This document shows, piece by piece, positions 139-62,515 of a DNA stretch of 64,000 nucleotides. Numbering within the stretch: position 1 is the first letter of the stretch; each line of letters starts with the position of its first letter. The DNA lies in the IMG/VR virus record IMGVR_UViG_3300024262_006558, positions 324,595 through 388,594 of that record, one strand, 5' to 3'. Under the pieces are notes generated by a model, which made no database searches, was not told the DNA's origin, and saw nothing but the letters and a program-made list of their open reading frames with translations. Position numbers and translations under genes: made by a program.

Positions 139-1398
139 TCATTCAAGAAAAATTCTTCTTTTAATGTTGTGGTTTTTAGGAAGAGACTTTATCCCAGTGT
201 CTCTTGCATAAAAATGAGTATTAACATATAAGCTTTCAGGGACTTCTGTTATACGGTTATTATTCGAAACATATAAGTTTCCACCTATAACGCTGTTAGC
301 GGGTAACCTCGAAAGGTTGCAACCTATCATCTTACAAGTGCCTCCTATTTTTATATTATCTGGCAGTTCTTTTAAATTACTGCAGTAATCAGCTAACAAC
401 ATTTTACCTACTTCAAGATATCCTGTTATTGATTCCACAGAGCTACCCTTTAATATTAAATCACCAGTAACCTTCAAATTATGAATTCTCTTAATATTTT
501 GAGCTCCTCCTAATTTTAAATCACCATCTATTTCTAAACCTGGAGTTAAATCTTCTATTTGAATTTTAGTTAAATCAAGGTCTCCGCTGATCTTTTTATT
601 TTCATCTTCTATTGGAAGATTGAATAAAAGTCTCATAGTAAAAGCTTGCGTATCTTTGATATTATCAATGATAGCTAATAAAATGTCTTGGTTTTTCTTT
701 AAAAAAGCCATTTCATCTATTCTATCATCAGTAGCATCCATGAATTGAGATGTCTCATAGTGAAACTGATGCTTATAAGTCTTCTTATCCTTATCATGTT
801 TATTTATGATAATTATTAAAGGACCTTGTCTATTGTAATAATCAAAATTAGATGCGCCTTTAGTTGCTGTACACCACCTAGTTCCTTTTCCATAAAGGAC
901 AGCAGCTTCTTGAGTAGTTGGCATTAATACTAACCACTCTTCATTGTCTAGCCAGACCTCAGCGCCTTCTTTAGCTACTTTATCAGCCTGACTTTGACTT
1001 ACAAATTCATCTTCTTTTCTAATTTTAGAAAGAGACTGATACAAATCTTGAAGTGATTTGTAATTTTTTATATTTCTTTTGTCTACAGGTAATTTAGAGT
1101 GATGTTTAAATAAAAAACCAAGGTCGTCTTTAGCTTTCTCTAAATCTTCAACCATTAATCTTTGAGCATCGTCTTTATTATCTAAAAACCTAAACAACAT
1201 CCACTCTAAATATTGAGAGTTGGGAGTTGGATCTGAATTAACAAAAGAGACAAATATGTCTTCAGGAGTTGGTTCAGTAAGATTACCTTTAAATTTATCA
1301 TCAGATAAAGACAGTTGAAGTTGAGCCTCCTTTAAAAAGGGGCTCGACTCAATCTTTGGTATAAACTTTTCTTTTAGAAAATGGATTCTATTTGACAT
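139..1398 (-). CDS. Hypothetical jumbo-phage protein, GTxWCTA motif plus C-terminal LRR-like/beta-solenoid repeats (paralog of next gene)
   Basis: 419 aa; YGKGTRWCTA; C-terminal LxxLPxNxxIxGxL repeats. Confidence 0.6.
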   Translation of the reverse strand: MSNRIHFLKEKFIPKIESSPFLKEAQLQLSLSDDKFKGNLTEPTPEDIFVSFVNSDPTPNSQYLEWMLFRFLDNKDDAQRLMVEDLEKAKDDLGFLFKHHSKLPVDKRNIKNYKSLQDLYQSLSKIRKEDEFVSQSQADKVAKEGAEVWLDNEEWLVLMPTTQEAAVLYGKGTRWCTATKGASNFDYYNRQGPLIIIINKHDKDKKTYKHQFHYETSQFMDATDDRIDEMAFLKKNQDILLAIIDNIKDTQAFTMRLLFNLPIEDENKKISGDLDLTKIQIEDLTPGLEIDGDLKLGGAQNIKRIHNLKVTGDLILKGSSVESITGYLEVGKMLLADYCSNLKELPDNIKIGGTCKMIGCNLSRLPANSVIGGNLYVSNNNRITEVPESLYVNTHFYARDTGIKSLPKNHNIKRRIFLE

Positions 1399-2834
1399 TA
1401 TTTTATCATTTTTCTCATTCCAGCAATTAACTCTTGATTTTTAATATCTCCTCCGATATATCTAATCTTAACATCTCTGTTAACTATCTTTAATCCATGA
1501 AGATAAAGATGGTTACCAACGCTTATATCTGGCTCTATGCGAGTGATATCGGTATTAGAAAGGTAAAGGTTTGCGCCTACTTCTAATCCTTTAGGTATAA
1601 CTTTTAATTTACTACCAACAAGCGTTATACTTCCTTTAACTGTGGTATTTTCTGGAAGGCTTTCTAATTTACAATATTTACCTTTAATAGATCTGCCAAC
1701 ATATAATGATCCAGTAATATGTGTAATTTCAGAACCTTCAAGAATTAACTCTTTTTCAACGTAAAGATTGTCTATACTAGTAGCTTTACATCCTCTAAAA
1801 TCACAATTACCTCTAACTGTCAAACCACTTGGTATCTCTACCATTTCAAGTTCAGACATAGTCAAATCTTGATCTATGATTTTATCTTCTGGAGTTAAAT
1901 TCTTGTTAAATTTAAACCTTAGTTTCAAACCATACGGAGTGCTTAACTTAGTAAAAACATCCAACAACTCTGGGTGTTGATATAACCATTCATCAACATC
2001 TCCAACACTTCTGTTTTGAGCGTTTTGGAACTGACCTGTCTCCCAGTGAAATTGAAACTTGTGATTGACTTGATCTTCTCTAGGGTCAGCATGTTTATCA
2101 ATCATAATATACAATCTTGATCCTGGGTACCTATCTTGAGTGTATGTCTTGAAATAGTTGCTACCATGCATGGATGCAGTACACCAAGTCGTACCCTTAC
2201 CATAAAGTATAGCCGCTTCTTTTGTTAAAGGAACAATGATTTTCCATCTATCTGAATCCAATAACACTTCCGCATCTTTTAACTTCTGAACTTTTAACAA
2301 TTGAGTATTAGACATCAGTTCTTCCTCTGAAAGATTTCTATAAGGAAGAACTGTGTTAAATAAATCATCAATATTTTTATAGTTCTTGATGTTTCTCTTT
2401 TTCTCGTCGAGTCTGTGCTTACACTTATCGAAAAGTAAAAGATACTCATGCATTCTTCCCATGTCTTCCATTAAAAATCTACCTTTTGCATAGATAGTTA
2501 ATACCCATTCAGAGTATTGCTTATTAGTGGAAGGATCAAGATCAACAATTTCTAAAAACGCAGACTTCTTTATAGACTCATCGTATAGCTTACGTTTTTT
2601 CTCATCAAAGTCTTCATCATTTTCTGGTATAGAAATCTTTCTACCGATATATCTATCAGAAAGAAATTCAACTCTACTTTTCTTCTGCTTTTTAACTTTT
2701 TTCTGTTGAGGTTTTTCTTCCTGTTTAGATATAGTATGACCCACTACTTTATCAGTAGTTTCTTTTACCTTTGCTTCTACTGCTTTCTTTGCAGTATTTT
2801 CTCTTTTGGATCTTCCCCAATTAATTTTGCTCAT
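1398..2834 (-). CDS. Hypothetical jumbo-phage protein, GTxWCTA motif plus LRR-like repeats
   Basis: 478 aa; YGKGTTWCTA, DPSTNKQYSEW and KFQFHWET blocks shared with 139..1398. Confidence 0.6.
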   Translation of the reverse strand: MSKINWGRSKRENTAKKAVEAKVKETTDKVVGHTISKQEEKPQQKKVKKQKKSRVEFLSDRYIGRKISIPENDEDFDEKKRKLYDESIKKSAFLEIVDLDPSTNKQYSEWVLTIYAKGRFLMEDMGRMHEYLLLFDKCKHRLDEKKRNIKNYKNIDDLFNTVLPYRNLSEEELMSNTQLLKVQKLKDAEVLLDSDRWKIIVPLTKEAAILYGKGTTWCTASMHGSNYFKTYTQDRYPGSRLYIMIDKHADPREDQVNHKFQFHWETGQFQNAQNRSVGDVDEWLYQHPELLDVFTKLSTPYGLKLRFKFNKNLTPEDKIIDQDLTMSELEMVEIPSGLTVRGNCDFRGCKATSIDNLYVEKELILEGSEITHITGSLYVGRSIKGKYCKLESLPENTTVKGSITLVGSKLKVIPKGLEVGANLYLSNTDITRIEPDISVGNHLYLHGLKIVNRDVKIRYIGGDIKNQELIAGMRKMIK

Positions 2835-8831: not shown

Positions 8832-9599
8832 TTATTTTTTTCTTCTGCTAGTTTTTCTAGTAGTTTTTTTAACAGTTTTCTTATTTTTATTCTTTTCTAA
8901 TTCAAGGTGAGGATACTGAGGTTTATACCTTCTAGAACTACCTCCTGAATTTCTTAGATCATATGGAGCATAATCTCTATTACGTACTATATCCTCTATA
9001 TGTTGTTTCTGAAGTTTACTAGGTTTTTCAGATAGGTTTTGTTGATATCTATCTATTGCTTCATCAAGCATCGCTTGATAAGCTCTTACGATTGGAGTTA
9101 TTGGATAATTAGTAGGATCTTTAACTGGATCCTTTTTGACAACTATCACCTTTTCTTTTTTAACAACCTTTGTAGAAATTACCTTTTTGACAGGCTTAGG
9201 CTTTAAAGCTACAGATGGCTTTTTAGGAGCGCTTGGTTTTTGAGCTACAGTTTTAGGTTTTACCGCTGTGCTAACTGGCTTCTTTGGAGCAACTGGTTTT
9301 GCTGTTACATTTTTAGATTTAGTTACTGTAGGTTTTTTGGGAGCAGCTGGTTTCTTAGTTACCGACTTAGTTACTGTAGGTTTTTTGGGAGCAGCTGGTT
9401 TTGCTGTTTTAGTTCTAACTGGCTTCTTTGGAGCAGTTGGTTTCTTAGTTACCGACTTAGTTACTTGTTTAGATTTAACAACAACAGCGGCTTTTTTAGG
9501 AGCCGCTGTTTTTTTTGGTGTAACTGGTTTTTTTACAGCAGGTTTCTTTGGAGCTGCAGGTTTCTTATTTACTGTTTTAGCTGTTATTTTCTTAGCCAT
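8832..9599 (-). CDS. Lys/Ala/Pro-rich histone H1-like basic protein
   Basis: Repeated KKPAAPKKPxVTKSVT; start probably MAKK at 9599. Confidence 0.65.
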   Translation of the reverse strand: MAKKITAKTVNKKPAAPKKPAVKKPVTPKKTAAPKKAAVVVKSKQVTKSVTKKPTAPKKPVRTKTAKPAAPKKPTVTKSVTKKPAAPKKPTVTKSKNVTAKPVAPKKPVSTAVKPKTVAQKPSAPKKPSVALKPKPVKKVISTKVVKKEKVIVVKKDPVKDPTNYPITPIVRAYQAMLDEAIDRYQQNLSEKPSKLQKQHIEDIVRNRDYAPYDLRNSGGSSRRYKPQYPHLELEKNKNKKTVKKTTRKTSRRKK

Positions 9600-9625
9600 A
9601 TAGTAATATAACACTTGCCATGACC

Positions 9626-12778: not shown

Positions 12779-13498
12779 ATGAGAAAAAGATTTTACATAA
12801 AACCTGACTTAAAACTTTTCTTAGACCAAGATCCGCTTAGGTTTTCCAGAAGTCAAATAACAGATTTAATTGAAAACCACTTCAATATATATAGCAGTAG
12901 ATTTGGTAAAAACATTCCATTCAAACTAAATAATAATCAGAAACAAATTATTAAATCTGTTTCTGAAAACAAGATAACTGTTATTTCTAAAACTAGACAA
13001 TTAGGCGTTTCTACAGTTATGCAATCAATTTTAACTTTGTTAATGGCTGATGCAGATGTTACTGTTTATTATATTTGTCATAATAAACAGTCTGCTAAAT
13101 CTCGTAAACAATCGATGATATATTTACTTGAATGCTTGAAAGAGTTTGAACTTCAATACAAATCTCCTGACAACCCTTCTTCATTTGATATTATAAAAGA
13201 AACTGAAAATTCTTATACTTTATCAAACTTTAGCAAAATAAAGTTCACAACTTACGATCCTAACCTTTTTAGAGGAAGTAATGCTATGCATGTTTATTTT
13301 GATGAATGTTTACCTAACAATGTAGCTGATGCTATGATTATGTTAGGGCCAATTACGAATGCGATTAAAGGTCATAGAATTATTATATCAAACCCTACAA
13401 GTGAAGCTGAATACATTTCTCAATCTTTGAGAAACTTAAGGCATCATTTTTTAAATATACCTAGAGGTGAATACCATTTATCTCCAGCCACTTACTAG
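12779..13498 (+). CDS. MRKxFY-leader protein with terminase large subunit (gp17-like) ATPase fragment
   Basis: MRKRFY; IPFKLNNNQKQII, SKTRQLGVST, FRGSNAMHVYFDE; 239 aa, no nuclease domain. Confidence 0.72.
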   Translation: MRKRFYIKPDLKLFLDQDPLRFSRSQITDLIENHFNIYSSRFGKNIPFKLNNNQKQIIKSVSENKITVISKTRQLGVSTVMQSILTLLMADADVTVYYICHNKQSAKSRKQSMIYLLECLKEFELQYKSPDNPSSFDIIKETENSYTLSNFSKIKFTTYDPNLFRGSNAMHVYFDECLPNNVADAMIMLGPITNAIKGHRIIISNPTSEAEYISQSLRNLRHHFLNIPRGEYHLSPATY

Positions 13499-49021: not shown

Positions 49022-49023
49022 TG

Positions 49024-49107
49024 TACTCGAAGAGGGAGTCGAACCCTCATGCCCATAAGGGCGCTAGATCCTAAGTCTAGTGCGTCTACCAATTCCGCCA
49101 TCCGAGC
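49024..49107 (-). tRNA. tRNA-Leu(TAG), canonical type II
   Basis: CTAGA-CT TAG GA-TCTAG, long V arm, A73. Confidence 0.92.
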
Positions 49108-49213
49108 AAGTAAATAAATTTAAACTTTTTTTATGATATTATCAAATTATGCTAATACAAAAAAGCGAAGACTCACGCCCTCGCTTTTAAACTACTATTA
49201 TTTCAAAATGTGA

Positions 49214-49618
49214 TTATTTCTTCTTCAGCATTCTATAAATAGGTTCGAAACCTATTCCAAACGCTAATCTCAATATAACAAAGTCAATAACTAGATTATC
49301 TGTAATAGGTTGAAATAACACCATTCCAGCAAAGAAACATAAAAACATTGCAGCTTGAGCAAAATGCCACCCATCCGTTAATGAGACAAACACTGTCGCG
49401 CTTAATGGAAAACGTTCTTTATATTCTGGAGTAAATTTCCATAAATAATACCATCGCTTTTTATATTCTTTAACTCTTCTTCCCCCTGAGTTGATCTTCC
49501 ACTTTTTCTTCCAACTTTTGGATTTATTCCAGTAGTTGTTTAAGAAACCGTCTTCGGAGCTAACGTCCATTATGGCGTTTGCAGCTCCAGCAAATAATGC
49601 AAATAAAATTGACAACAT
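49214..49618 (-). CDS. Membrane protein
   Basis: Hydrophobic segments; TDGWH motif. Confidence 0.6.
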   Translation of the reverse strand: MLSILFALFAGAANAIMDVSSEDGFLNNYWNKSKSWKKKWKINSGGRRVKEYKKRWYYLWKFTPEYKERFPLSATVFVSLTDGWHFAQAAMFLCFFAGMVLFQPITDNLVIDFVILRLAFGIGFEPIYRMLKKK

Positions 49619-49626
49619 GTTTTTAT

Positions 49627-49812
49627 TTATAAATATGTTGTGTTTTTTGTGCCTCCAGAATTATAATATGTACTTCCAGAATTATAATATGTACTTCCAG
49701 AATTAGGTATATAAGGATCTATACACTCTCTTTCACAACTAAACAATGTCGGGATAAAAATTGTCCCCAATGTTACAATTGATGCTTTTTTTAAAAAATC
49801 TCTCCTATTCAT
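49627..49812 (-). CDS. Small Tat-signal lipoprotein
   Basis: MNRRDFLKK...LFSC; NSGSTYY repeats. Confidence 0.65.
   Translation of the reverse strand: MNRRDFLKKASIVTLGTIFIPTLFSCERECIDPYIPNSGSTYYNSGSTYYNSGGTKNTTYL
49654..49704. repeat. 21-nt tandem repeat inside Tat lipoprotein gene
   Basis: ccagaattataatatgtactt x2 plus partial copy. Confidence 0.8.
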
Positions 49813-49837
49813 AGTATATAAATATACTTATTTTTTG

Positions 49838-49917
49838 TACCCCTGGAGAGACTCGAACTCTCAAAAGCTCTGGGTTTGAACCAGTTATCTGTACCGATTT
49901 GAATAAGCCACAGGGGC
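49838..49917 (-). tRNA. Atypical tRNA with CAA (Leu) anticodon, short V arm, enlarged D region
   Basis: GCCCCTG/CAGGGGT acceptor, CTGG-TT CAA AC-CCAG, GAGAG-TTCGAGT-CTCTC. Confidence 0.75.
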
Positions 49918-49922
49918 GGGAT

Positions 49923-50165
49923 TTAAATTCTTCTTATTAGTTTTTTAAACTTAACACTTATTACTTTGATAGGGTTTATTTTATATGCATGAAAATACAA
50001 CCCAAAAAAGCAAGCTGATAACAGGTAAAAAAAGAAGGTTGTACTCCAGTAAGAATCTGTTAACTTCATCAGCATTGCGAATGCTATATCGTATCCTAGA
50101 GGGTTGAAGAATGTCCCCATTACTAATGCTAGTGTTCCGATCGTTTTTCTGTTCACCTTCATCAT
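49923..50165 (-). CDS. Small membrane protein
   Basis: FFNPLGYD...two TMs. Confidence 0.6.
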   Translation of the reverse strand: MMKVNRKTIGTLALVMGTFFNPLGYDIAFAMLMKLTDSYWSTTFFFYLLSACFFGLYFHAYKINPIKVISVKFKKLIRRI

Positions 50166-50202
50166 CCATTGTTTTCATATTTCGTTTAACATTTATTTAG
50201 TG

Positions 50203-50282
50203 TACCCCTGGAGAGACTCGAACTCTCAAAAGATCTGGGTCTAAGCCAGTTAGCTGTACCGATTTGCATAATCCACAGGGGC
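50203..50282 (-). tRNA. Atypical tRNA with TAG (Leu) anticodon, short V arm
   Basis: Paralog of 49838..49917; loop CT TAG AC. Confidence 0.75.
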
Positions 50283-50350
50283 ATATAATTATAAATAGTC
50301 GTGACTTGTATCCACGGATGTAACCTCTCAACTTTGCGTTCTATTCATTG

Positions 50351-50433
50351 TACCTCAGACAGGATTTGAACCTGCACGCCCATTACGGGCACTGGATTTT
50401 AAGTCCAGCGTGTCTGCGTTCCACCACCGAGGC
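50351..50433 (-). tRNA. tRNA-Leu(TAA), type II
   Basis: CTGGA-CT TAA AA-TCCAG, long V arm, A73. Confidence 0.9.
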
Positions 50434-50446
50434 GTGATGTTTGTTG

Positions 50447-50526
50447 TACCCCTGGCGAGACTCGAACTCGCAATAGCTCTGGGTTTAAGCCAGTTATCTG
50501 TACCGATTTGAATAAGCCACAGGGGC
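50447..50526 (-). tRNA. Atypical tRNA with TAA (Leu) anticodon, short V arm
   Basis: Paralog; loop CT TAA AC; T stem GCGAG/CTCGC covaries. Confidence 0.75.
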
Positions 50527-50531
50527 ATGCT

Positions 50532-50744
50532 TTATTTTTTTACTACCTTTTCAAAAAAGCTAACGGGCATGTCTCCGTTAATTTTCATAAACTCTTCTTC
50601 CGTTAAGCAATCACCATTAGCTTGCCAAGCCGCTTGGCAGAAATCTCTATATTCCCTACCATACTTTCTAGTGATATCCTTAAAGCTGATCTTAAAGTTG
50701 GATTCATCCGACTCAAAGTCAATAATTTCAAATATTCTTTTCAT
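50532..50744 (-). CDS. Hypothetical protein (start MKRIFE; longer ORF call overlaps tRNA)
   Basis: ATG 3 nt after tRNA-Leu(AAG) discriminator. Confidence 0.55.
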   Translation of the reverse strand: MKRIFEIIDFESDESNFKISFKDITRKYGREYRDFCQAAWQANGDCLTEEEFMKINGDMPVSFFEKVVKK

Positions 50745-50746
50745 AG

Positions 50747-50834
50747 TACCTCTACCCAGACTCGAACTGGGAACGTTTCTCATGTTTGCCACGGGTTCTT
50801 AGCCCGCCAGCTTTGCCAATTTGCTCATAGAGGT
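50747..50834 (-). tRNA. tRNA-Leu(AAG), A34
   Basis: GCGGG-CT AAG AA-CCCGT, long V arm, A73. Confidence 0.85.
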
Positions 50835-50843
50835 ATGAATAAA

Positions 50844-50962
50844 TGTTTCAAACAGGACTCGAACCTATATTGTTACGTACCAATCAAGTCAGAGTCAGAG
50901 CCTCCTTCAATATGAGGAAACTAACTTCCAACCTGTGCGCCTACCAATTTCGCCATTGAAAC
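50844..50962 (-). ncRNA. Type II tRNA-like RNA with ~34-nt insertion in anticodon loop
   Basis: GTTTCAA/TTGAAAC acceptor, Leu-like D arm, CAGGT/ACTTG stem enclosing 41 nt, V arm, T arm. Confidence 0.7.
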
Positions 50963-50967
50963 ATTTG

Positions 50968-51040
50968 AGCCTATGACAGGAATCGAACCTGCGACATCTT
51001 CCACACCAAGGAAGTGCTCTACCGACTGAGCTACATAGGC
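50968..51040 (-). tRNA. tRNA-Thr(GGT), G37
   Basis: CTTCC-TT GGT GT-GGAAG. Confidence 0.9.
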
Positions 51041-51045
51041 ATTAG

Positions 51046-51181
51046 TGGAACAGCGGGGAATCGAACCCCTTGCAAGATTTACATTTGACACCTTAAGATA
51101 TCAACAATACTCACTAGGATTTATCACCACTTAACCAAGAGCGATCTTAAGCTCACTAGAGGCTGCAGATAAAACTGCTCC
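51046..51181 (-). ncRNA. 136-nt tRNA-like RNA resembling a tmRNA tRNA-like domain (acceptor plus T arm, no D stem)
   Basis: GGAGCAG/CTGTTCC-A, GGGG-TTCGATT-CCCC, TGCAG/TTGCA closing stem. Confidence 0.65.
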
Positions 51182-51187
51182 GTTTAG

Positions 51188-51259
51188 AGCTACATGCAGG
51201 AATCGAACCCGCCTCTGAAGCTTACAAGGCTCCTGCATCACCGACAATGCTTATGTAGC
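51188..51259 (-). tRNA. tRNA-Thr(TGT)
   Basis: GGAGC-CT TGT AA-GCTTC. Confidence 0.9.
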
Positions 51260-51272
51260 AAGAATAATTTTG

Positions 51273-51403
51273 GGGAGGGGGCTGGACTCGAACCAGCGAC
51301 CTTCTGCTTAACAGGCAATTAGAAGGAAGACAAAACATAGCCTTATTTTTAAGGGGATCATTAAATCTTTTAAGATGCTCTAACCAACTGAGCTACCCCT
51401 CCC
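51273..51403 (-). tRNA. tRNA-Asn(GTT) interrupted by 56-nt insertion in 5' strand of anticodon stem
   Basis: TC[56 nt]TGC-CT GTT AA-GCAGA; intact D, T and acceptor arms; G-1 and C73. Confidence 0.78.
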
Positions 51404-51417
51404 ATTTATTATACTTG

Positions 51418-51505
51418 AGGTACTAGTAAGATTCGAACTTACGATGGAGGATCTCTCCTCGACAGATTTGCAGCCTGCCCCTTTCGCCCACTCAGGCATA
51501 GTACC
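51418..51505 (-). tRNA. tRNA-Cys(GCA) with long variable arm
   Basis: GCAGG-CT GCA AA-TCTGT; V arm GAGGA-GAGA-TCCTC; U73. Confidence 0.85.
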
Positions 51506-51516
51506 ATATATTTTTG

Positions 51517-51590
51517 TGGAGGCACTCGGTAACGATCCGAGATCTCTGGGACTTCAATCCAGCGCATAGACCAATCTTTGCTATGCCTCC
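51517..51590 (-). tRNA. tRNA-Phe(GAA) copy 1, G37
   Basis: CTGGA-TT GAA GT-CCCAG; T loop ATCGTTA. Confidence 0.85.
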
Positions 51591-51604
51591 CTATTATTTT
51601 ATTG

Positions 51605-51789
51605 TGGAGGAAGACGGAATCGAACCGCCGACCAACCCCTCCTACGGGGCCACTCTACCAAGACACCTTTTCAAAACCACCATACAACTTAAACACTTTC
51701 CAAAACCATTATTCATGACTAATGGCTAATTACTTATGTCGTTCTCTAGCTGAATCTACTCCGTTGAAATGTCACTGAGTTACTCCTCC
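51605..51789 (-). ncRNA. tRNA-like RNA with ~113-nt insertion in D loop and irregular anticodon loop (GTAGGA)
   Basis: GGAGGAG/TTCCTCC acceptor, ACTC/GAGT D stem, insert closed by GACATTT/AGGTGTC, intact T arm. Confidence 0.7.
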
Positions 51790-51846
51790 ATGGGTCCCGT
51801 TATTTTCTAGACAGCAAGCACGGGACCACACCGCTGTAAGACGTTG

Positions 51847-51921
51847 TGCTGTGTACTGGATTCGAACCAGTGATCTTCTCGGCTTCAACGAAACGCTTTA
51901 GACCAACTAAGCTAACACAGC
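51847..51921 (-). tRNA. tRNA-Phe(GAA) copy 2, G37
   Basis: TTTCG-TT GAA GC-CGAGA. Confidence 0.9.
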
Positions 51922-51928
51922 ATTTTTG

Positions 51929-52002
51929 GGTGATGGACGGGCTACGACCCCGCGACCTTTGGCGCCACAAGCCAATGCTCTACCAACTGAGCTACCACCA
52001 CC
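51929..52002 (-). tRNA. tRNA-His(GTG) copy 1, encoded G-1
   Basis: TTGGC-TT GTG GC-GCCAA; G-1:C73. Confidence 0.88.
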
Positions 52003-52071
52003 ATATTCATAAACTGAGGAATTCCTAAGTTTACGATTTGTAATACCAATACGTCAAAGAACTATTCTTTG

Positions 52072-52144
52072 GGTGTCGATGGGGTTCGAACCCTACCATC
52101 CAGATTCACAGTCTGGGACTCTCTCCAAGTGAGCTACCGACACC
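52072..52144 (-). tRNA. tRNA-His(GTG) copy 2, encoded G-1
   Basis: CCAGA-CT GTG AA-TCTGG; G-1:C73; irregular T stem. Confidence 0.85.
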
Positions 52145-52448: not shown

Positions 52449-53340
52449 TTTTAAATTTCCTTTCAAAATAATGGTATAAACACTTTATGTTCAAGTATAT
52501 AATATGAACATCATGTTGTGATTTCCTTTCAAAATAATGGTATACATACTGCGTCTAATATATTTAGGCATGCCTCAAATGTTGTGATTTCCTTTCAAAA
52601 TAATGGTATACATACTTTTCTACTCTTTATACTGAAGAAGCAAAGGGTTGTGATTTCCTTTCAAAATAATGGTATACATACTTTAAGCTTTTACAGGCCT
52701 CATCTTACGACTGTTGTGATTTCCTTTCAAAATAATGGTATACATACTATGGGTACATAGTTCCTCTCTCATACTTCGGTTGTGATTTCCTTTCAAAATA
52801 ATGGTATACATACTGCGTCTAATATATTTAGGCATGCCTCAAATGTTGTGATTTCCTTTCAAAATAATGGTATACATACTTTCGACATGAATACATCGCC
52901 TTTCAAAGTGGTTGTGATTTCCTTTCAAAATAATGGTATACATGCTGATTGAGCTTATGGGTGTTATGGATTCTTCGTTGTGATTTCCTTTCAAAATAAT
53001 GGTATAAATACTCTATCTTTGGAACAATAAACGATAAGGGGTTGTGATTTCCTTTCAAAATAATGGTATACATACTATTTGGCATCGAATTCCTGTTTGA
53101 GTGATAGTTGTGATTTCCTTTCAAAATAATGGTATACATACTATTTAAATACTTGCACATTAATATATACCCGTTGTGATTTCCTTTCAAAATAATGGTA
53201 TACATACTAAAGCCTGTTGACTATATGAGGCAACTAGTGTTGTGATTTCCTTTCAAAATAATGGTATACATACTTAAAAACAAAAAATGGCTTTTGCGAT
53301 ACTCGTTGTGATTTCCTTTCAAAATAATGGTATACATACT
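52449..53340 (-). CRISPR. CRISPR array: 13 repeats of 36 nt (52515..53340) plus a degenerate distal repeat; 30-nt spacers
   Basis: Plus-strand repeat GTTGTGATTTCCTTTCAAAATAATGGTATACATACT, period 66 (one 28-nt spacer); degenerate copy at 52449..52484 implies leader at right and minus-strand transcription. Confidence 0.97.
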
Positions 53341-53454
53341 AGGCCCTATCATAATCGATTAATAGATAGGTGATTATAAAGTATATTGAGTTAAAAAACT
53401 GGAGACTTATTATATAGTAACATATATTTACGATCAGTTTTCTCATTATAATTT
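53341..53454 (-). promoter_or_regulatory. CRISPR leader
   Basis: AT-rich 114 nt between cas6 stop and first repeat; cctatc...gatagg hairpin. Confidence 0.6.
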
Positions 53455-54183
53455 CTATTTAGCCAGGTATTGTCTATTATTTTCAATGTTGAATATTGAT
53501 CCAAACCCTATACCAGTAGAGCTTCCAATTCCAATAGCATATAAGGTATCCATAACTTTTTTATTTGCAAAAATTTCTAAATTACATTGATTTGCTATGT
53601 TAAATACTCTTTTTCCATTTATTGATTGTTTAATATCAATATGTCGAGTTCTATTTCTTTTTGATTTCCTTACTTTTACTTTAAATTTATCTAATTTCAA
53701 ATCGGAATTAACTTTACTCAACTTGTTTATAATATGCTTATGGAGCTCCTCTTCAAAATCATCATCATTTAAAGTATGTATAATGTCAGATTTATTCTTT
53801 GTGGTCTTTAAAAAAATTGGAGATAACATACCTACATGATTCCATCCATTTTTGAAATTATCTATTCTAAAATCATATCCATCATATTTCATACCATAAC
53901 ACAATTCAATCGTATTTGCATTGATAATAAGAAAATTAATTATGGCAGATATGAATTCTGCATCCAGAGATGAAACAGTAATATAGCATCCGCTACTCAT
54001 ATCTAAGAAATTCTCACCTTTAATCTTTTTTCCGCCCTGGATTGTAGATAAAGAATAGTTTGAGGATCTATCATGATAATGATTATTTTTTCCTAAACAT
54101 TTATGTAAGAAAGATATTACATGATATTGATTATTAAAAGGAACTCCCTCTTTGGTGCCTTTAAATTTAATTTTTATACGCAT
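53455..54183 (-). CDS. cas6: CRISPR-associated endoribonuclease Cas6
   Basis: C-terminal GIGSSTGIGFG loop; YSLSTIQGG; LSPI. Confidence 0.9.
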   Translation of the reverse strand: MRIKIKFKGTKEGVPFNNQYHVISFLHKCLGKNNHYHDRSSNYSLSTIQGGKKIKGENFLDMSSGCYITVSSLDAEFISAIINFLIINANTIELCYGMKYDGYDFRIDNFKNGWNHVGMLSPIFLKTTKNKSDIIHTLNDDDFEEELHKHIINKLSKVNSDLKLDKFKVKVRKSKRNRTRHIDIKQSINGKRVFNIANQCNLEIFANKKVMDTLYAIGIGSSTGIGFGSIFNIENNRQYLAK

Positions 54184-60334: not shown

Positions 60335-60817
60335 TTATTCTTCAGTTAATGTTTTAACTCTTTCCTCTCTAATTTCGTTTGCAGAGATTCTAATTTTTAA
60401 ATCTTGAGATCTATAAACCTCCAATTCTTTTAAGAGAACTTTTATTTGTGTCTTATTTTTTTCACCCGCTATTCTATCAGGATCTTTGAGCCTTTCAATT
60501 ATTTTTTTTTGATGATCAATTCTTTGATTTTTCTTATCTATAATCTCATTAACATACCCTTTCATCTTACTCTTTAAATGACTATTAACTTTTTTAGCAT
60601 TTATAGGTAAATCAAAATGATCTAGCTCATGTTGAATTAAATCAATTTCCTTAGGCGTTAATTCAACAATATTTAAAATAGCGCTAATCACCTTCTGACT
60701 CTTTTCATACATTTGGATATTGTGCAGATTTTCTTTTTGAATATTTTCAAGTTTATCCTCTTGATATTTTATCTGCTTATATAATTGCGATAATCTAAAT
60801 TTCAAATCCATTTCCAT
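60335..60817 (-). CDS. Coiled-coil hypothetical protein
   Basis: 160 aa. Confidence 0.55.
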   Translation of the reverse strand: MEMDLKFRLSQLYKQIKYQEDKLENIQKENLHNIQMYEKSQKVISAILNIVELTPKEIDLIQHELDHFDLPINAKKVNSHLKSKMKGYVNEIIDKKNQRIDHQKKIIERLKDPDRIAGEKNKTQIKVLLKELEVYRSQDLKIRISANEIREERVKTLTEE

Positions 60818-61405: not shown

Positions 61406-61697
61406 CCTTCACCTCAAGTATTGTTTTAGAACTAAGAGTAGAGTTTTCCTTAATGCATATTTCAGATTTAAAAGTAAACCATGGAAAACCTTTCCCATGC
61501 TCTATTTCATCCACAACGGGCATTAACCAATCCCATGAACTATCAAACCTTAATTCTCCAGCTGGAGTTCTATGAGTGACAAAATCACAGCCCCTTTTAT
61601 ATAGATCAGAGCTGGGATCATTTATATAACCCAGGCTTCCATTCTCTATACCCATGAAATCGGCTATAAGAATATTATTTTCTATACTTCCCTCCAT
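61332..61697 (-). CDS. Conserved phage hypothetical protein
   Basis: N.LIADFMG...F.SSWDWLMPVV..IE. Confidence 0.6.
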   Translation of the reverse strand: MEGSIENNILIADFMGIENGSLGYINDPSSDLYKRGCDFVTHRTPAGELRFDSSWDWLMPVVDEIEHGKGFPWFTFKSEICIKENSTLSSKTILEVKGVLDRKKAYYKACVDFVKWYNENN

Positions 61698-62515
61698 TAT
61701 TTCAATAAATTTTTAACGTTCTCCAAATGTTCTTGACTCATGATTCTACCATTTGTATTAACTCGAATAAACAACTCAATCAACTGATTTTTATTAAGCT
61801 CGTTAACTTCGGCTACATTTACCGTAAAACCTCTGAATTGGTTTTGATCACGTATAGACATTTGAGAAAATAATAAACCTTTGTACGCAAATCTATCTTC
61901 ATAGAATTCTATCAAAGCGGTCATTCTTTGCTTCCCATCAACAATCTCATATAACTCTCCTTTTTCTGAATAAGATCTTCTGTTAAATAAGAACTTTCCC
62001 AAATCATAGTTTTTCATGAGGGAATCTATAAGAGCTACCTTATCATCTATATCCCATACATGATCTCTTTGGTATTCGGGATCCATATCTACTCCAAAGT
62101 AATAATGTTTATGAAGAAGTGAATCGATATCTTGTTGCATATAACTCAAATGAAACTCATCTTTCTCGCAAAGTATTTCTGTAGAATTACCCGTGACAGG
62201 CCTTAAGACTGTCCAATGAACATAGTCAATATCTACCTTAGTTTCTTTCTCTCTACTGTGAGCTCCAGGAACACTAGTCTTTTCAATTTTATAATAAAGA
62301 CCTCCATCAAACACTTCAAGGACTACAGTTTTTGTGACAGCTCCATACTTAACCTCTTCACCCGCTTTGAATGAATACGTTGTTTTTTTTGAACCAAACA
62401 TACCTTTAACTCTATTCAGAGAAGCTTCAAGGTTTTGTTGTTTTCTTTCAGCCTCAACCTTAGCTTCTTTCTCTATTTTCCTTTGAGCTTTTTGCTCTTC
62501 CGTCATCTTAGCCAT
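61697..62515 (-). CDS. DUF262 (ParB/GmrS-like) domain protein
   Basis: PEYQRDHVW, LIDSL, EIVDGKQRMT, F.RVN..G. Confidence 0.82.
   Translation of the reverse strand: MAKMTEEQKAQRKIEKEAKVEAERKQQNLEASLNRVKGMFGSKKTTYSFKAGEEVKYGAVTKTVVLEVFDGGLYYKIEKTSVPGAHSREKETKVDIDYVHWTVLRPVTGNSTEILCEKDEFHLSYMQQDIDSLLHKHYYFGVDMDPEYQRDHVWDIDDKVALIDSLMKNYDLGKFLFNRRSYSEKGELYEIVDGKQRMTALIEFYEDRFAYKGLLFSQMSIRDQNQFRGFTVNVAEVNELNKNQLIELFIRVNTNGRIMSQEHLENVKNLLK

Follow-up and report, generated by a model that had tools for sequence, protein, structure and literature searches.

Introduction

In Flavobacterium columnare, type VI-B arrays that have 36-nt repeats and lack cas1 are filled by the Cas1-Cas2 of a type II-C system (PMC8092290). 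The VI-B and II-C arrays of this bacterium have in common a leader-distal GTTGT motif and poly(A)/poly(T) tracts in the leader, and the tracts have been suggested to be binding or signalling sites for spacer integration (PMC8092290). The type VI-A arrays of Listeria seeligeri are likewise filled by II-C Cas1-Cas2 (bioRxiv 10.1101/2024.10.25.620265), and type IV-A3 plasmids acquire spacers via the type I-E system of their host, in the account of Benz et al. as cited in PMC11656645. Adaptation in trans has so far been demonstrated within one cell, or between a plasmid and its host.

Two further kinds of system stand close to the locus described below. The CRISPR systems of huge phages are usually without Cas1, Cas2 and Cas4, and some of them have the repeats of their hosts (PMC7162821). 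The type I-F2 (I-Fv) system of Shewanella putrefaciens CN-32, for which the structures 5O6U, 5O7H and 9G44 are available, natively uses 32-nt spacers, and its backbone changed upon a 15-18 nt alteration in spacer length (PMC4937334).

Here we describe a CRISPR locus of a huge phage in which an adaptation-less, minimal type I system resembling I-F2 is joined to an array that, together with its leader, is built like those of Bacteroidota II-C systems and of the VI-B systems reliant on them. The features that connect the phage array with II-C and VI-B arrays are the 36-nt repeat, spacers of 30 (occasionally 29) nt, an A-rich, ACA-type leader-proximal repeat end and, in the leader, a poly(A) run at a distance of about 53-59 nt.

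Results

A four-gene type I effector lies directly upstream of the array

The stretch of DNA analysed here, which we call the window, is the final 64 kb of IMG/VR contig IMGVR_UViG_3300024262_006558 (388,594 bp). It is huge-phage-like: small ORFs are densely packed and run in one direction, ten genes encode tRNAs, and the proteins include an NAD-dependent ligase and members of several families that are found only in phages. The array and its cas locus were also found in three other public assemblies and on a 494,080-bp metagenome contig, Ga0210003_1000004. The sequencing runs listed with the locus comprise one DNA run, from a subsurface metagenome, and no RNA runs.

An earlier note on this DNA had placed a class 1 effector beside the array, and the effector is real: genes for Cas3, a Cas7fv-like protein, a Cas5fv-like protein and Cas6 lie directly upstream of the array, all on the minus strand and in the order cas3-cas7-cas5-cas6 (Table 1). 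There is no further ORF between cas3 and cas6, and no Cas8, Cas11 or Cas4 was found at the locus. Cas3 comprises an HD nuclease and an SF2 helicase with the motifs LHDIGK, GFGKT, DEYH and SAT intact; it starts with the HD domain (residues 11-119) and is a stand-alone protein without a Cas2 domain. Because this protein is the largest ORF in the window, Cas9 and Cas13b are excluded from the window.

Table 1. Features of the phage CRISPR locus (positions in the 64-kb window)
Feature	Position	Strand	Description or evidence
CRISPR array	52515..53340	minus (transcribed)	13 repeats of 36 nt and 12 spacers
Array trailer end	52449..52514	minus	Degenerate terminal repeat and oldest spacer
Leader	53341..53454	minus	Between cas6 and first repeat; A6 run at 53393-53398 (plus strand)
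cas6	53455..54183	minus	Pfam PF01881, E 9e-14; TIGR01877, E 8e-23 (above cutoff); PADLOC Cas6b, E 1e-33
Cas5fv-like subunit, 327 aa	54174..55157	minus	Cas5 RAMP core with inserted helical domain at about residues 144-243
Cas7fv-like backbone subunit, 358 aa	55154..56230	minus	NF040577, PADLOC and phmmer
Cas3, 740 aa	56272..58494	minus	HD, Cas3_HD, DEAD and Cas3-like_C_2; TIGR01596 above cutoff

The backbone subunit matches the Cas7fv profile NF040577 with E 1e-16, at a score of 61 bits that lies under the equivalog cutoff of 200, and we therefore regard it as a homologue of Cas7fv and not as an equivalog. The PADLOC Cas7fv profile matches the same protein with E 7e-14, phmmer aligns its residues 6-278 with the Cas7fv chains 5o6u_C and 9g44_F (E 5e-9), and its homologues are precomputed as PF28157, Cas7fv-like. 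For the Cas5fv-like protein there was no profile match, nor did a profile built from it match any PDB sequence. Its AlphaFold model (pLDDT 77) has its best, though weak, PDB match in 9g44_B, from a type I-F2 complex (Foldseek rank 1, E 0.078; VIA Z 7.7 over 138 aligned residues), followed by type I-A Cas5 subunits (Z 4.5-4.8), and the position of the gene is kept in all relatives. By profile, Cas6 is a generic or Cas6b-type endoribonuclease, and it has a C-terminal glycine-rich loop. We ruled out a Cas6f (Csy4-type) identity, as the profiles that match this protein are TIGR01877, PF01881 and PADLOC Cas6b, not Cas6f.

Repeats of 36 nt alternate with spacers of mostly 30 nt

The array is as the earlier note had described it, with a 36-nt repeat and spacers of 30 nt in 11 of 12 cases and of 28 nt in one, and its period is accordingly 66 nt throughout, a single 64-nt step excepted. 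The repeat starts with GTTGTGATTTCCTTTCAAAAT; 11 of the 13 copies are exact and the other two carry one mismatch each. Beyond them, at the trailer end, lie an extra 30-nt spacer (52485-52514) and a 14th, degenerate repeat with six mismatches (52449-52484). Two spacers, at 52551-52580 and 52815-52844, have the same sequence. An array of this kind is, by far, not attributable to chance. In the 64-kb window, allowing up to eight mismatches, we found neither further copies of the repeat on either strand nor an anti-repeat or tracrRNA-like match to it.

The crRNA sense is assigned to the minus strand, and the leader to the interval between cas6 and the first repeat, by the orientation of the cas genes and by the degenerate repeat at the trailer end, the end at which related arrays degenerate too. 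Read in this sense, the repeat starts with AGTATG and its 3' end is GGAAATCACAAC. It is predicted to be unstructured, with no stable fold. A strong Cas6 hairpin in the repeat was considered and dropped, because the repeat folds without stability.

Related huge phages carry the same genes and the same array geometry

The protein collection contains 35 relatives of the Cas7fv-like protein, and IMG/VR has 36 loci; many of them are on contigs of 140-600 kb. Each relative that we inspected has an array with the same four cas genes, which follow one of two orders. From these loci we recovered 15 distinct repeat lineages, all with 36-nt repeats, and in 14 of the 15 the repeat starts with GTTGTGATT. 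Among the 196 unique spacers of the family, 83% are 30 nt long and 12% are 29 nt long. One divergent member, L203, has a different repeat, with a hairpin.

The likeness of the family repeats to host repeats is confined to the first 9-10 nt and the last few nt. In most phage lineages the leader-proximal repeat end has the host ACAAC pattern; the ATACT of the window is less similar and is among the least host-like ends of the family. The repeats of L003 and L008 have GTTG...CAAC termini that are predicted to pair. Identity between the Cas7 proteins of different phage lineages is only 27-53%.

Bacteroidota II-C arrays share the repeat start, spacer length and polarity of the phage arrays

To compare the phage arrays with those of possible hosts, we scanned one genome per prokaryotic species with the pattern GTTGTGATTTNCTTTCAAA, which matched at least 120 loci. 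At least 89 arrays start with GTTGTGATTTGCTTTCAAA, almost all of them in Bacteroidota, with some in Ignavibacteria and Melioribacter. Among the matches listed, the neighbouring genes are cas9, cas1 and cas2, and the repeats are 46-47 nt long; the 1410 II-C spacers taken from these matches are 30 nt long in 81% of cases and 29 nt long in 15%. The earlier note was thus right both on how Bacteroidota II-C repeats start and on their spacer length of about 30 nt. The resemblance that it expected between the phage repeat and host arrays held for the repeat start and for spacer length, and broke down at repeat length, which is 46-47 nt and not 36 nt, and at position 11, where the 15 phage lineages without exception have C and the 89 host arrays listed have G. 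The C at position 11 probably reflects the putative mini-hairpin of the phage Cas6.

Over its first 21 nt, the window repeat has 20 in common with 15 of the 76 host arrays listed. A bacterial array, L023, comes closer in its dimensions, with a 36-nt repeat, a period of 65-66 nt and 20 of 21 nt in common with the phage repeat end. It has the dimensions described for type VI-B arrays (PMC8092290) and exemplifies the 36-nt arrays that are served by II-C systems. The exact phage 21-mer was not found in any host array in a metagenome scan, whose matches were this phage, the family member L166, the array fragment L170 and two single chance matches. Because the hosts that share the repeat start have repeats of 46-47 nt, the phage array is closer to the 36-nt arrays of the VI-B type. 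In a separate set selected by Cas1, distant II-C lineages have 36-nt repeats and 30-nt spacers, so that 'class 2 geometry' is a fair label for the phage array.

Polarity agrees as well. In the GTTGTG orientation, the degenerate repeat lies at the 5' end of host arrays in 13 cases and at the opposite end in none among the arrays listed, and the leader of host arrays, on the cas2 side, lies 3' of the repeats; the phage array is arranged in the same way. Spacer-end nucleotide composition showed no bias common to phage and host spacers.

A poly(A) run is conserved at one position of the leader

In the window leader, the A6 run occupies +53 to +58 from the leader-repeat junction. Among the host II-C arrays listed, 39 of 54 leaders have a run of at least five A residues in +51 to +60, compared with 1 of 46 on the trailer side. 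Phage lineages show the same feature at the same place: poly(A) falls in +51 to +60 in 11 of 15 lineages and at +49 to +53 in one more, against a chance expectation in AT-rich phage DNA of 2-5% per leader. Outside the poly(A) run the phage leader is not conserved, and a scan of the leader for sigma-70 promoters and terminators gave results no better than shuffles.

The run is also present in independent, Cas1-selected II-C arrays with 47-nt repeats, and it is missing in seven of nine distant II-C arrays with 36-nt repeats. This pattern of presence and absence across the II-C sets identifies the poly(A) run as a marker of the Bacteroidota-type II-C clade in particular.

Adaptation genes are absent from the searched regions

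The earlier note had taken the array to be Cas1-less, and neither cas1 nor cas2 came to light wherever we searched. Searches with HMMs made from host sequences, 56 of Cas1 and 59 of Cas2, gave no match in the window or in the roughly 0.9 Mb of DNA that surrounds related loci, and both genes are missing within 10 kb of about 20 distinct related phage loci. A peptide-pattern scan of IMG/VR for Cas1, which rests on two conserved peptides, returned 30 contigs, and the 388-kb contig of this phage is not included in them.

These searches bear on whether the phage has a Cas1-Cas2 of its own, elsewhere in its 390-494 kb genome, or receives one from another resident element, and whether that enzyme sets the geometry of 36-nt repeats and 30-nt spacers. 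The DNA read directly is 64 kb, whereas the genome may measure up to 494 kb, the length of the longest assembly, and a 217-kb IMG/VR contig, L165, has a II-C-type cas1 and an array, so large viral contigs can encode such a gene. Against this stand the absence of cas1 and cas2 around the family loci and the failure of the IMG/VR scan to return the 388-kb contig. The cas genes of one system are, moreover, normally clustered, which counts against a distant Cas1-Cas2. We consider this source of the spacers unlikely.

Spacers turn over at the leader end in related phages

Three related arrays from different samples, L197, L198 and L205, have their older spacers in common and differ in their leader-end spacers; L166 and L170 have the same repeat and just two spacers in common. 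The leader-end differences among relatives show ongoing, polarised acquisition in the family, at loci that have no adaptation module nearby. For this phage itself, the arrays L132 and L133 are identical and a third, L134, has collapsed to one spacer, probably by assembly. Because the array of this phage is invariant between assemblies, the evidence for turnover is that of its relatives.

The spacers of the window and L005 arrays, compared by BLAST with GenBank phages, gave chance matches only, and four spacer seeds searched in IMG/VR matched just the arrays themselves. The 196 unique family spacers had no match in any of the loci that we fetched, and the 1410 host II-C spacers gave only short chance matches to the window and its relatives. 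A search with Cas6 homologues for the host taxon returned too few matches to point to one. Since these searches yielded no host, protospacer or PAM, the acquisition step is one that we infer.

An array that no longer acquires spacers could have arisen if an ancestor captured a host array of the VI-B or II-C type together with its leader and the present phage merely inherits it. Such an origin would fit the identical spacer content of three assemblies from different samples, the duplicated spacer, the degenerate distal repeat and the lack of targets in the searches above. It fits poorly with a leader motif and repeat ends that are conserved across Cas7 lineages 27-53% identical while the remaining leader has diverged, with the leader-end gains in relatives, and with 11 of 13 repeats being identical, as recent repeat copying would give. 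On balance, we find a static array of this kind improbable.

Discussion

Borrowed adaptation as a proposed explanation of the phage array

Given the anatomy of the array, its conservation in the family, the leader motif and the turnover in relatives that we observed, we favour the borrowing of a host's II-C Cas1-Cas2 as the best explanation of the phage array, and we hold it with moderate confidence. The earlier note had proposed that the phage array mimics the host repeat end and is in this way served by host Cas1-Cas2. The repeat ends, the polarity, the leader poly(A), the spacer lengths and the turnover in relatives agree with that proposal, and its integrase step stays conjectural.

In the mechanism that we envisage, whose integrase identity, crRNA processing and interference are inferred, a host Cas1-Cas2 of the Bacteroidota II-C type would act in trans and insert 30-nt spacers at the phage leader-repeat junction. 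Transcription of the array would then start in the cas6-side leader and follow the minus strand, which is the reverse of the sense in which II-C arrays are read. Cas6 would cut the repeat 3' of a weak mini-hairpin and leave an 8-nt 5' handle, AUCACAAC; because the repeat has no stable fold, both handle and cut site are placed provisionally. The 30-nt guides would load the Cas5-Cas7 backbone, and Cas3 would then be recruited to DNA; the targets are presumably competing mobile elements or the host. A shorter Cas7 backbone, which the earlier note had thought the 30-nt guide might imply, is not required, because the guide is just 2 nt below the 32 nt of I-Fv.

Some features of the phage system sit uneasily with borrowed spacers. 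PAM compatibility, between an adjacent type I PAM and a spaced II-C PAM, is the main mechanistic difficulty. Type I effectors require a PAM adjacent to the protospacer. The II-C PAM of F. columnare sits 5 nt from the protospacer (PMC8092290). The repeat lengths, 36 nt in the phage and 46-47 nt in the hosts, also count against borrowing, since a ruler-type integrase would need tolerance; this mismatch in repeat length is the same puzzle that was raised for VI-B arrays (PMC8092290). The difference at position 11 and the ATACT repeat end of the window weigh on the same side. For the family as a whole, we propose that the huge-phage I-F2-like systems, in at least 15 repeat lineages, dropped their adaptation genes and re-modelled their repeat ends and leader for loading by host II-C Cas1-Cas2, and that Cas9 might help to choose the PAM. 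We regard this wider proposal as evenly poised between right and wrong.

It is very unlikely, in our judgement, that the geometry of 36-nt repeats and 30-nt spacers is native to the type I lineage, a legacy of a lost type I adaptation module whose likeness to class 2 arrays is coincidental. The geometry is constant throughout the family, and the handle-like ATCACAAC end could be kept for Cas5 and Cas6 binding alone. On the other side, we found no family member with cas1-cas2, and the nearest characterised relative, I-Fv, has 32-nt spacers (PMC4937334); Bacteroidota II-C arrays are matched in polarity, in the preference for 30-nt over 29-nt spacers and in where the leader poly(A) lies. It is also very unlikely that the phage array, in addition or instead, feeds a host Cas13b or Cas9 with guides chosen by the phage. 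In favour of this, Al-Shayeb et al. (PMC7162821) proposed that phage arrays whose repeats are host-like make use of host effectors, and L003 and L008 have the GTTG...CAAC termini that are reported for Bacteroidota VI-B repeats and occur in L023. Against it stand a complete type I operon with its own Cas6 beside every array, and a window repeat that has no 5' GTTG, is predicted to be unstructured and has no tracrRNA-like match in the window.

Implications if adaptation is borrowed

If the borrowing of host II-C Cas1-Cas2 is true, this phage would be the first virus to feed its own class 1 interference complex via a host class 2 adaptation module. Cascade would then tolerate, or read, spacers picked by means of a spaced PAM of the Cas9 type, and II-C integrases would recognise a small, portable set of signals, namely the repeat ends and, at a distance of about 55 nt, a poly(A) run in the leader. 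The same arrangement would explain by what means huge phages keep their numerous cas1-less CRISPR systems up to date. The compact four-gene Cascade-Cas3, with its 30-nt guides, may have an unusual PAM logic. A rule for host prediction would also follow, by which the CRISPR type of the host could be read from the leader and repeat of the phage.

Comparison with known systems

With the type I-F2 system of S. putrefaciens CN-32, the phage locus has in common a Cas7fv-type backbone homologue, a Cas5 with, on its weak structural match, a putative helical insertion of the same kind and the order cas3-cas7-cas5-cas6-array, and both are missing Cas8 and Cas11. The two differ in that the phage system is found on huge phages, its Cas6 is generic or Cas6b and not Cas6f, its Cas3 is unfused to Cas2, and it has no Cas1. 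The arrays differ too: the phage has 36-nt repeats and 30-nt spacers, whereas I-F2 has 32-nt spacers and a 28-nt repeat. Because of the different Cas6, the lack of a Cas2-Cas3 fusion and of Cas1, and the other array geometry, we place the effector as a relative of I-F2 and not as a member.

The array finds its nearest counterpart in the VI-B arrays of F. columnare (PMC8092290). Neither has cas1 or cas2, and the two agree in 36-nt repeats, 30-nt spacers, a leader-distal GTTGT, a poly(A) run in the leader and a repeat end in CACAAC; in each, transcription proceeds from the leader, opposite to II-C. The VI-B system, however, is chromosomal and serves Cas13b, a class 2 effector that targets RNA without a DNA PAM, whereas the phage array serves a class 1 Cascade-Cas3. 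The window has neither cas13b nor paired GTTG...CAAC termini, and the neighbours of its array are type I cas genes. Borrowing by the phage would therefore cross both class and replicon. With the Bacteroidota II-C arrays themselves, the phage array has in common the GTTGTGA start, spacers of 29-30 nt, a leader on the 3' side and poly(A) at about +52 to +60. The host arrays, by contrast, have a 46-47-nt repeat, an adjacent cas9-cas1-cas2 and a tracrRNA, none of which is present in the window; their transcription runs in the direction of the leader, and their products work with Cas9 and a tracrRNA.

Type IV-A3 plasmids, arrays of huge phages and the present locus are alike in residing on mobile elements, in lacking adaptation genes and in having a host-like leader and repeat. 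The pairing of IV-A3 with I-E (Benz et al., as cited in PMC11656645) stays inside class 1, whereas here a class 1 effector is combined with an array of class 2 type. The huge phages described with host-like repeat arrays (PMC7162821) are without effectors, in contrast to the complete class 1 effector found here. We therefore read the phage locus as a minimal type I effector with putative adaptation in trans, whose array belongs with those of II-C and VI-B but is not accompanied by an effector of either type. None of the in-trans cases cited here, those of VI-B, VI-A and IV-A3, has class 2 adaptation supplying a class 1 effector from the other side of the virus-host boundary.

Gene order and neighboring genes

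Members of the effector family carry the same genes in two arrangements, cas3-cas7-cas5-cas6-array in the window and in the related phage locus L003, and cas7-cas5-cas6-array-cas3 in two other related phage loci, L005 and L008. Directly upstream of cas7 in L005, itself from a huge phage, lie about 15 successive ORFs of 83-107 amino acids each, which look like a family of tandem paralogues. On its trailer side, the array of the window directly adjoins a cluster of ten tRNA genes. An ORF with a GmrSD_N (DUF262) domain lies upstream of cas3, separated from it by a few genes, and may constitute a separate nuclease module.

Features of the window and of related sequences
Feature	Sequence	Coordinates	Strand	Description
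48-nt tandem repeat	window	9286-9465		about 3 copies, within ORF 8832-9614
tRNA cluster	window	49023-52144	minus	ten genes: Leu x3, Thr x2, Cys, Phe x2, His x2
Repeat position 11	window	52525		
ORF	window	60335-60817		Pfam Enterotoxin_b, sub-threshold
GmrSD_N ORF	window	61697-62515		PADLOC match, NsnA-like
Channel-like gene	L132 (same phage)	839-1888		precomputed matches: SBP_bac_3, Lig_chan, Ion_trans_2
Small ORFs	L005	6034-9935		
Shortened array	L134 (same phage)	12888-12989		
Divergent array	L203	12629-12781		

Elsewhere in the window, the 48-nt tandem repeat probably encodes a repetitive segment of the protein in which it lies. The match of another ORF to Enterotoxin_b reaches 18.9 bits, below the cutoff of 25, over 24 residues, and was taken as noise. 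Just past the end of the window, in L132 (another assembly of the same phage), is a gene whose product is a ligand-gated, glutamate receptor-like channel, an uncommon cargo for a phage.

Array state and repeat variation

In the Logan assembly of the phage to which the window belongs (L134), the array is cut down to one repeat, one spacer and the degenerate repeat. This shortened form was probably produced by collapse of the repeats during assembly; the alternative is that it represents a genuine deletion variant.

The array of L203, a divergent family member whose Cas7 is 29% identical, has a period of 65 nt and a repeat unlike those of the rest of the family, with a strong hairpin and ending in GTTGAAAGT. 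This repeat suggests that the effector family is able to combine with another repeat class.

Comparison with type II-C systems

A 217-kb IMG/VR contig (L165; IMGVR_UViG_3300028602_000001) carries an array of 48-nt repeats together with a II-C-type cas1, which shares 59% identity with the host profile. Either the contig is host DNA that was misclassified, or it comes from a huge phage with a II-C module of its own. Position 11 of the repeat in the window and the related arrays is a fixed phage-host difference inside a repeat end that otherwise agrees: all 15 phage lineages have C there, and every one of the 89 host II-C arrays has G.
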